A program made the position numbers and the translations under genes. A DNA stretch of 64,000 nucleotides from Vitrella brassicaformis CCMP3155. Lineage: Eukaryota; Protista; Chromerida. The stretch is from assembly GCA_001179505.1 (NCBI GenBank), contig CDMY01000453.1, positions 1 to 64,000 on the forward strand, read 5' to 3'. Shown here piece by piece: positions 7,101 through 10,100 of this stretch (position 1 is its first letter; the number at the start of each line of letters is the position of its first letter). The notes beneath the pieces are model-generated. The model was not told the DNA's origin. It did no database searches and saw nothing but the letters and a program-made list of their open reading frames with translations.

Positions 7101-10100
7101 CTCAGGGTGTAGTCCTCCAGCAGCATTGACGTCATGTAGATGCCCACGCCCGTCCAGGCGGCCGCCGAACCACCCATGATGGTGAGTACGATCAGCTGGA
7201 TGGTCCACACGGCCCACCTGGTCCACTGCGACACTGCCGCCGTGCCGAGCTGCCGCGTCGTGTGCGTCTTGCCGGCGCCCTCCTCGTCAAGGCAGTCGAG
7301 TGGGACGTGGTTCAGCCGGCACTCCTCCTGGATGCGCACGCCCTGATGGCCAGTGACACAGAACACACACACACACACACACACGTGCATGTCTGATGGG
7401 CTCCCATCGCGATGTGGGAGTGGGCTTACAAGGTTGCGCAGCGTCTTGGTGTCGTAGAGGTCGCGAACCGCCGTGGGCACCTGCCGACCCAAACACACAC
7501 ACACACACACACGACATGGAGATGCGTAGGTGCACCATGCGCAACACGGTGTCTTGCTTGCTCTCTCACCATGGGGATCTTCTTGCGCAGTGCCGAGATG
7601 AGCTGCGCGGCGCTGAGGGAGTTGCCGCCCAGCTTGAAGAAGTCGTCAGTCGCTCCCACACGCGGGGCGTCCAGCAGGTCCTGCCAGGTCTCGGCCAGGA
7701 AGGCCTCAAGGGGTCCCTCTGGCGCCAGGTACTCGCCCTCATGGGCGTTCCCACAGGGCGCCTGCGAGCGACACACACACGGAAAAGAGAGAGAGAGAGA
7801 GGGGAATACAGCCACAGGCACACGTGTGTGTCTGGCGTGGGATGTGTGCGCACCGTTTCAGGTCCGGGTGGAGGGAACTTTTCGATGGCCTTGCGGTCGA
7901 CCTTGCCCGAGGGCGAGAGGGGGATGGTGGCGACCGTGACGTATCGGCATGGCACCATGTAGTCCGGCAGGATCGACGCAGCGTGGGCCTTGAGACGGTC
8001 GGGCGTGAGGGCGTCCTGCGCAGTGCCGGGCTTGGGCTCGATGTAGGCAATCAGCCTGCAGACAGACAGACAGAAACAAACCAACCAAAGAGAGTGAAAC
8101 ACTCACTCGTAAGGGAGATGCAAGCAGGTGCACGAGTGGCTGGCTGCTCACGTCTTGGATCCGTTCTTGCCGATGTCAGTTCTCGCGACGACACACACGT
8201 TGCCGACGCCCTCCATGCGAGCGATGGCCGACTCGATCTCCGAGAGCTCCACACGGAACCCCCTTATCTTGACCTGCGAGTCGATGCGGCCCAGGAATTC
8301 GATCTCGCCCTTGTCATTCCACTGCACCAGGTCGCCCGTGCGGTACAGCCGCATGGGCCGCCCCCCGGCCTCGCTGCTCGCCCCCTCAGACACGCTCATG
8401 CTCTCCTCCTCCCCCCTGGCAGAGCTCACGAGCGTCGTCATGGACGGCACGGAGGTGTCGGAGCGGTCGGACCGTGAGCGGGCCATCTGTGTGATGACCA
8501 TGCGGGTGAGCTTGCCGTCCCTCTCCCTCTCCCTCTCCTTCTCGCCGCCGGCGCGCTCGATGGAGACGGGCGTGGGAGCGTTGTCGGAGACGCACGAGGC
8601 GGCCTGTGCGAGGAAGACCCAGTTGGGCTGCGGGTGGGGGTGGCCGTCGGGGATGAACTTCTCGGGGTTCAAATCAGGACGGTTGATGTAGCCACGGGCA
8701 ACCGAACGACTGCACGCACAGAGAGACGTGTGTGGTGAGGAGCCATGTCTGTCATGTGTGGGGGTGGTAGTGTCTGTCGCTGGGTTACCCTCCGACGAGG
8801 AGCTCTCCGGGCTTCCGGGGGTCGGTGCACGGCTGGCCGTGGTCGTCCACAATGTGTGCAGAGTAGCCCGGGAGGGGCTTGCCGATCGTCACGGGCACGT
8901 CCGGCTGCAGCTCAGTGTAGGTCGCCACGACGGTGGCCTCAGTGGGGCCTGCTCGGCAAGTCGAGGCAACCACACACAGGACGTTCTAGCATGTCACGTG
9001 CTTTGGTGTCTTTTCTCATGTGTCTCGCCCACCGTATGTGTTGAGGAACTGTCGTCCGAGTGCGCACCACTTGCTGACCACCTCAGGGGGGCAGGCCTCC
9101 CCGCCAGTGATGACGATGCGCAGCAGGGGCGGCGCTGGGATGTCCTCTACCACACGCAACACCTGCACAACCACACACAAACAGTTCACCCCTGGCTGCA
9201 GGAGCTCGTGGGTTGGCACCTACCGTGGGGACGGTGGAGAAGACGGTGATGCCCTTGCTGGCGAGGACGGTGCCGAGGGCAGGCCCCGCGCGCATCGTCT
9301 CCTTGGTGCCGACGACCAGGGCCGCACCAGATGCGAACGCCAACCTGCGGGAGGGATGGATGGACACATCGGATGCAGTGACGGCGTGCTGCCCGTATGA
9401 CGGTGTGTGTGATGTGTGTGTTGAGCGTACCAGATCTCCTCAACGGACGCGTCGAACGAAGTGGAGAAACCCTGGAGCACTCTGCAGCAGCACCAACACA
9501 GCAACACACATGGGTGGGGAGCGGTGCCTGTGGACTTTTCTCTCGGCATGGCCTGCCTATTGTACCTGTCATAGTGGTTGGTGGGGAAAGCCCTCTGCTC
9601 GCCGAGGACGAAGTTGACGGCCGACTGGTGCTCGATGCACACACCCTTGGGCCGGCCAGTGCTGCCCGACGTGAAGATGGCGTAACAAGCGTGCGATGGG
9701 CCAACGGCCGGCTTCAAACACGGCAGAGTCCAGTCACTGCTCGATGCGATCAACTCGCTGTCAGGGGGGAAGGACACAAATCAATTAGGGAGGGATATAT
9801 GGTGCATACGAGTCTCCTCCGTTGTGTGCTCACTTGGCCTTCTCGAGGGTGAGGGCGCAGGGTGTGCCCTTGGGCAGGGCGGCAGACCACGCGTGCAGTC
9901 CACTGATGTCGGCCACATCAGCGGCGGGCGCCTCGCCGCCCATGTCGGTGATGACGGAAAGGAGCTCGGGCAGGGTCAACACGAGCTTGGCGTGACTGTC
10001 CTCGATCGTAGACCGGACACGCTCTGCACACACAAACCATCCACCCCACGCACACACAAGCCGTCCTGATCCGTCTGTTTCCTCCCTCCCTCTCTCTGAT

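Follow-up and report, generated by a model that had tools for sequence, protein, structure and literature searches.

ε-Poly-L-lysine (ε-PL) is an antimicrobial polymer used commercially to preserve food. Its producers known to date are, to our knowledge, actinomycetes and a small number of other bacteria, together with clavicipitaceous fungi. Vitrella brassicaformis is a coral-associated, photosynthetic relative of the apicomplexan parasites. This study concerns a gene on the minus strand of a 64,000-nucleotide stretch of V. brassicaformis CCMP3155 DNA (contig CDMY01000453.1, positions 1–64,000; hereafter the window). By its sequence features, the gene is a nuclear, intron-rich, single-module nonribosomal peptide synthetase (NRPS) of the Pls/PosA family. 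Its adenylation (A) domain carries the ten-residue substrate-pocket code D-A-E-S-I-G-T-V-V-K, for which L-lysine is the likely substrate.

The closest described enzymes were tabulated together with their codes (PMC10522769, Suppl. Table 2). Pls of Streptomyces albulus (BAG68864.1) has the code DAESIGTVVK with lysine as its experimentally determined substrate, and PosA, the δ-poly-L-ornithine synthetase of Acinetobacter baumannii, has DMEHNGTVSK and ornithine (Orn). The same table gives DFECLSAVTK for a 2,4-diaminobutyrate (Dab) enzyme, DFEYVGTVTK for a 2,3-diaminopropionate (Dap) enzyme and DGESVSVVNK for a β-lysine enzyme. Patel et al. (2023) determined crystal structures of PosA with ornithine and lysine and characterized mutants (PMC10522769). 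The Asp at code position 1 binds the α-amine, and the Glu at position 3 (PosA Glu221) makes a charged contact to the side-chain amine. Mutants show this Glu to be essential, and it is conserved throughout the cationic homo-polyamino-acid synthetases; in PosA, Thr at position 7 and Ser at position 9 help binding (PMC10522769). Position 2 gates the substrate length, being Ala for lysine, Met for ornithine, Phe for Dap and Dab, and Gly for β-lysine, and the PosA M218A replacement increases the efficiency with lysine ~10-fold (PMC10522769).

Bacterial Pls, fungal Epls and the lysine A domain of bacitracin synthetase BacB (module 1) have a conserved lysine pocket in common (Purev et al. 2020, PMC7179176). 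Unlike the window enzyme, this BacB domain belongs to a module of a canonical NRPS that has several modules and condensation domains. Epls of Epichloe festucae is, like the window enzyme, eukaryotic, of the same architecture and with a conserved lysine pocket, a likeness that does not come from a residue-by-residue comparison with the window; it differs in being fungal and in its proven product, ε-PL (PMC7179176). Family homologues have also been noted in Alveolata, Metazoa and Amoebozoa, and the 2023 table lists V. brassicaformis CEM14083.1 under "Alveota" with the code DAESIGTVVK and the entry Lys (predicted) (PMC10522769, Suppl. Table 2). Organism, code and prediction are those of the window gene, with which CEM14083.1 is probably identical or paralogous. 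Neither the code nor the lysine prediction is therefore new for Vitrella, as both were tabulated in 2023. In the literature searched, no paper ties Vitrella to polylysine as a product.

The adenylation pocket

The original prediction, made by hand alignment to GrsA and placed at 8790–9483, read the code from six short motifs. Each of these motifs is real and was found once in a six-frame search, on the minus strand (positions in Table 1). They occur in different reading frames because they are located in separate exons, and the predicted span corresponds almost exactly to exons 5–8. Each code-bearing exon was searched singly with HMMER against all PDB chains, with the structures of S. albulus Pls (7WEW), A. 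baumannii PosA (8G95–8G98) and GrsA (1AMU) as references.

Exon 5 aligns with residues 204–223 of 7WEW (RVLAGLSVAFDASCEEMWLA) and with the PosA segment FDMSFEEIW. FDASVEE is thereby placed opposite FDASCEE of Pls and FDMSFEE of PosA, with the Asp of position 1 and the Glu of position 3 present. Exon 6 aligns with 7WEW residues 220–290 (E 9.7e-6), and the Ser of position 4 falls opposite Ser257, that is Asp214 + 43, the spacing that separates residues 235 and 278 in GrsA. Exon 7 aligns ungapped with 7WEW residues 262–308 (LLIVGGE...WNTYGPTET versus RIVITGGE...LNTYG) and with PosA residues 272–312, and exon 8 aligns ungapped with GPTETTVSAS of PosA and with 7WEW residues 304–329, as well as with LgrA. 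Exon 10 aligns ungapped with residues 485–524 of GrsA, which positions the Lys of SGK on Lys517. The best structural match of exons 5, 7 and 8 is PosA. The same register returns the published PosA code at all positions shown (1–3 and 5–9) and, for Pls, positions 1–7 of the published code. Because these published codes, that of PosA being structure-checked, are reproduced, the register is correct.

A formal alignment of this kind was able to shift the pocket residues; it gave the same ten, and the code stands as first read, borne out by 7WEW, PosA and 1AMU. The reading is not due to chance, as the AMP-binding exons match Pfam with E values from 3e-16 to 7e-4 and the ten core motifs are intact. 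One detail required correction. The Gly of LNTYG is the correct residue; however, it had been read from intron bases, and the true codon (NTY-G-PTE) is split G|GC by an 84-nt intron.

The window code is identical to that of S. albulus Pls at all ten positions, including the Ala at position 2. The proposal of L-lysine is thus supported on better grounds than those first given, which relied on a code for BacB given as DAESIGSVCK (8/10). That code was not confirmed: as an unspaced string it is absent from the papers searched, as is DAESIGTVVK, and the comparison is superseded because the Pls match is 10/10. The accompanying argument that an acidic Glu fits a basic side chain agrees with the contact of PosA Glu221 to the side-chain amine (PMC10522769). 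PosA belongs to the same family, has the same architecture and shares Asp (position 1), Glu (3), Thr (7), Val (8) and Lys (10) with the window enzyme, whereas its Met at position 2, where the window has Ala, blocks substrates longer than ornithine.

The code could be read with motif anchors in 137 bacterial family members. DAESIGTVVK occurs in 43 and DAESIGTVIK in 70, so that 113 of the 137 members gathered carry DAESIGTV[IV]K. Among these are the relatives with the highest identity (40–45%) and the best scores to the C-terminal exon of the window gene. The A-domain exons are ~35–48% identical to bacterial homologues (tblastn). The 10/10 conservation of the pocket despite this level of identity suggests that selection acts on lysine recognition.

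Gene structure and domain architecture

The local G+C content is 55–63% and the locus contains short open reading frames (ORFs) only. The A and thiolation (T) domains are encoded by eleven exons on the minus strand, from 10525 down to 7570, separated by ten introns of 61–97 nt with GT at the 5' end and CAG at the 3' end (Table 1). Exon borders and phases were obtained by reading the DNA followed by a scripted check. The borders of exon 3 are GTGAGC/CAG with the split codons in frame, and joining exons 5 and 6 restores the Trp that follows FDASVEEI (EEIW|LAF). The mapped exons contain no stop and no frameshift, and in composition scoring the coding pieces score as coding, whereas the introns do not. 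Plus-strand ORFs across the region gave no family matches, and the opposite strand thus offers no competing gene. An alternating TG/GT run is present in nine of the ten mapped introns, and the acceptor is CAG in all ten.

Table 1 Features of the Pls/PosA-family locus, positions in the window.
Feature	Position	Strand	Content	Evidence
Exon 1	10401–10525	-	ATG 10523–10525; adenylation domain from protein start	Splice check; tblastn to bacterial Pls-family
Exon 2	10121–10326	-	Core motifs A1 (WTYGELN) and A2	Pfam AMP-binding, E 2.9e-16; GT-AG borders
Exon 3	9834–10023	-	Variable A2–A3 segment	Border and split-codon check
Exon 4	9566–9757	-	Core motif A3	Pfam; NCBIfam TIGR01733; PDB matches including 7WEW
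Exon 5 (51 nt)	9431–9481	-	Core motif A4, FDASVEE 9436–9456; code 1–3: Asp 9451–9453, Ala 9448–9450, Glu 9439–9441	HMMER to 7WEW, PosA 8G95/8G97
Exon 6	9224–9344	-	ITVFSTVPT, with VFSTVP 9227–9244; code 4: Ser 9236–9238	HMMER to 7WEW
Exon 7	9033–9162	-	IVITGGE 9097–9117 and LNTY-G (A5, first half), LNTYG as first read 9031–9045; code 5–7: Ile 9109–9111, Gly 9103–9105, Thr 9037–9039	HMMER to 7WEW, PosA
Exon 8	8789–8948	-	A5, second half, EATVVAT 8920–8940; code 8–9: Val 8929–8931, Val 8926–8928; A6 start (GELLVGG)	Pfam AMP-binding, E 2.7e-10
Exon 9	8152–8709	-	Core motifs A6, A7 (YRTGDL) and A8	NCBIfam TIGR01733, E 4.9e-30
Extra codons in exon 9	~8367–8639	-	~90 in-frame low-complexity codons between A6 and A7	tblastn
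Exon 10	7854–8055	-	Core motifs A9 (LPDYMVP) and A10 (SGKVDRK), SGK 7902–7910; code 10: Lys 7902–7904	Pfam AMP-binding_C
Exon 11	7570–7761	-	Thiolation (carrier) domain; Ser of GGNS 7618–7620	Pfam PP-binding (PF00550), E 2.9e-8
Further exons	4170–7400	-	Pls/PosA-type C-terminal region; borders not mapped singly; largest exon ~4645–5400	
Assembly gap (N run)	~3282–3806		3' of the last exon, by a few hundred bases	

The A domain is single and N-terminal, and reading of the spliced exons shows core motifs A1–A10 to be all intact. Pfam AMP-binding, AMP-binding_C and PP-binding and NCBIfam TIGR01733 (amino acid adenylation domain) were matched on exon pieces. The T domain follows directly, with its phosphopantetheine-attachment Ser (GGNS) intact. 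Further downstream, six pieces match TIGR02353 (Pls/PosA family non-ribosomal peptide synthetase; best E 1e-61, 209 bits). Scored piece by piece in this way, the sum is ~355 bits, below the curated whole-protein cut-off of 423. The locus is collinear with bacterial family members of ~1320–1541 residues down to ~4310 (tblastn).

No canonical condensation or thioesterase domain was found by Pfam in the downstream pieces, in which the Hexapep matches are weak only. With a single A–T module and no Condensation match, the gene does not have the makeup of a multi-module NRPS. In our reading the C-terminal region probably consists of three repeats, each of two hydrophobic helices and a hexapeptide-repeat soluble domain. 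Pairs of hydrophobic segments and stretches of hexapeptide type in the translations would agree with the layout of Pls, in which six membrane helices accompany three soluble domains in tandem. The C-terminal polymerase exon has no match among the solved structures in the PDB.

What can be read directly from the DNA is the code, the exon structure, the order of the domains and the intactness of the catalytic motifs. The order of A domain, T domain and transmembrane pairs with three tandem soluble domains (TIGR02353), and the lack of canonical condensation and thioesterase domains, are those of S. albulus Pls. Unlike the latter, the window gene is eukaryotic and nuclear, with many short introns and additional codons between A6 and A7; the overall identity between the two is moderate only, and the window enzyme is known from sequence.

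The additional codons, located in exon 9 and starting with EKERERERD, are Ser/Arg-rich and missing from bacterial homologues. The G+C content by codon position is 0.58/0.57/0.93, versus a flat profile in the introns, and the segment probably represents a loop of low complexity that is translated, and not an intron. It touches none of the pocket residues. If the polymer is made, this eukaryote-specific loop of ~90 residues might represent a new element for regulation or targeting.

Substrate, product and alternative explanations

The structural data on PosA and the identity with Pls suggest how the window enzyme may work. The Asp at position 1 would hold the α-amino group and the Lys at position 10 the carboxylate and ATP, while the Glu at position 3, aided by the Thr at position 7, would bind the ε-ammonium group. 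With its small side chain, the Ala at position 2 would make room for the four methylenes of lysine. L-Lysine would be adenylated and then loaded as a thioester onto the carrier-domain serine, after which the membrane-embedded C-terminal tandem domains would repeatedly add lysine to the ε-amine of free lysine or of the growing chain, with ε-PL as the end product. That the locus encodes the lysine-type pocket of a Pls/PosA-family enzyme is in our judgement highly probable. L-Lysine is, taken by itself, likely the substrate of the pocket, and ε-PL as the product is proposed with less confidence. We infer lysine as the actual substrate, the ε linkage and the polymeric nature of the product from the features described above.

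Several points weigh against this explanation. Here, as in any alveolate, both the lysine substrate and the product are predictions from sequence, and a pocket code is predictive of the substrate rather than decisive. This is illustrated by PosA, whose code is nearest to that of the BacB lysine domain, yet the enzyme prefers ornithine (PMC10522769). The alignments were made exon by exon and not with the full-length protein as one sequence, and the splice junctions were set from GT-AG signals, the tracking of reading frames and homology. The A6–A7 insertion might also affect the enzyme. Maximum-likelihood analysis of the C-terminal exon gave the window a branch of 2.95 substitutions per site with no supported sister, and Met-type sequences lie at nearly the same distance from it as DAESIGTV[IV]K types. 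Because this branch is very long the tree is uninformative; phylogeny speaks neither for nor against the lysine class, and it is likewise silent on the donor lineage.

The enzyme could instead activate another cationic amino acid (L-ornithine, Dab, Dap or β-lysine) and make another cationic homo-polyamino acid. The Asp at position 1 and the Glu at position 3 are common to the whole family, the preference of PosA shows that proximity of the code to a lysine domain is compatible with ornithine, and the tree places the window within no substrate class. However, none of the characterized Orn, Dab, Dap and β-lysine enzymes shares the Ala that the window code has at position 2, and each departs from this code at further positions, in contrast to the lysine enzyme with its match at ten of ten positions; the gain of lysine efficiency in PosA M218A points in the same direction. 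We consider activation of a different cationic amino acid quite unlikely. A different product from lysine, such as a short oligomer or one with another linkage or another acceptor, is compatible with the divergence of the C-terminal region, which is ~36–45% identical to bacterial homologues, sits on the very long branch and, in its polymerase part, is the portion lacking a structural match. The chain length made by Pls depends on linkers (PMC7179176). The region is nevertheless collinear with the entire bacterial TIGR02353 region, including the three predicted repeats of a transmembrane pair and a soluble domain, and a fungal enzyme of the same architecture yields ε-PL (PMC7179176), so that a product other than classical ε-PL appears rather unlikely.

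The remaining explanation, that the locus is a dead copy or a bacterial contamination of the assembly, could draw on the assembly gap just 3' of the gene. Bacterial DNA is excluded because ten spliceosomal GT-AG introns interrupt the A–T region, and the open, frameshift-free exons with every catalytic motif intact, together with the contrast in coding score between exons and introns, argue against a dead copy. Taken together, this explanation is highly improbable.

Returning to the lysine pocket and ε-PL, whether V. brassicaformis really makes this polymer, or a close variant, with this enzyme is to us nearly an even call, leaning slightly to the negative. If it does, it would be the first alveolate and the first alga to produce a cationic polyamino acid. 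The presence of a lysine-type pocket in this intron-rich gene of an alga shows that the enzyme family has a firm place in a free-living relative of the malaria parasites, and the enzyme may there shape the dealings of the alga with bacteria on corals.

Bacterial relatives

Comparison of the largest C-terminal exon with bacterial and archaeal genomes identified 35 loci with 36–41% identity over the full match, two short fragments among them showing higher identity. A word search with the C-terminal region of one of these, a cyanobacterial homologue (L021), returned 4172 family members. Among the 120 matches listed, all are much closer to L021 than the window gene is, and none is encoded by the window.

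Three bacterial relatives of 1626–1890 residues (P0029, P0067 and P0081) contain an extra 4'-phosphopantetheinyl transferase domain (PF01648), which suggests that they bring their own carrier-priming enzyme. The Pls-family genes of two metagenome-assembled genomes labelled Janthinobacterium lividum (L009 and L011) group tightly with Hymenobacter genes in the C-terminal tree, a placement that suggests mis-binned contigs or a recent transfer.

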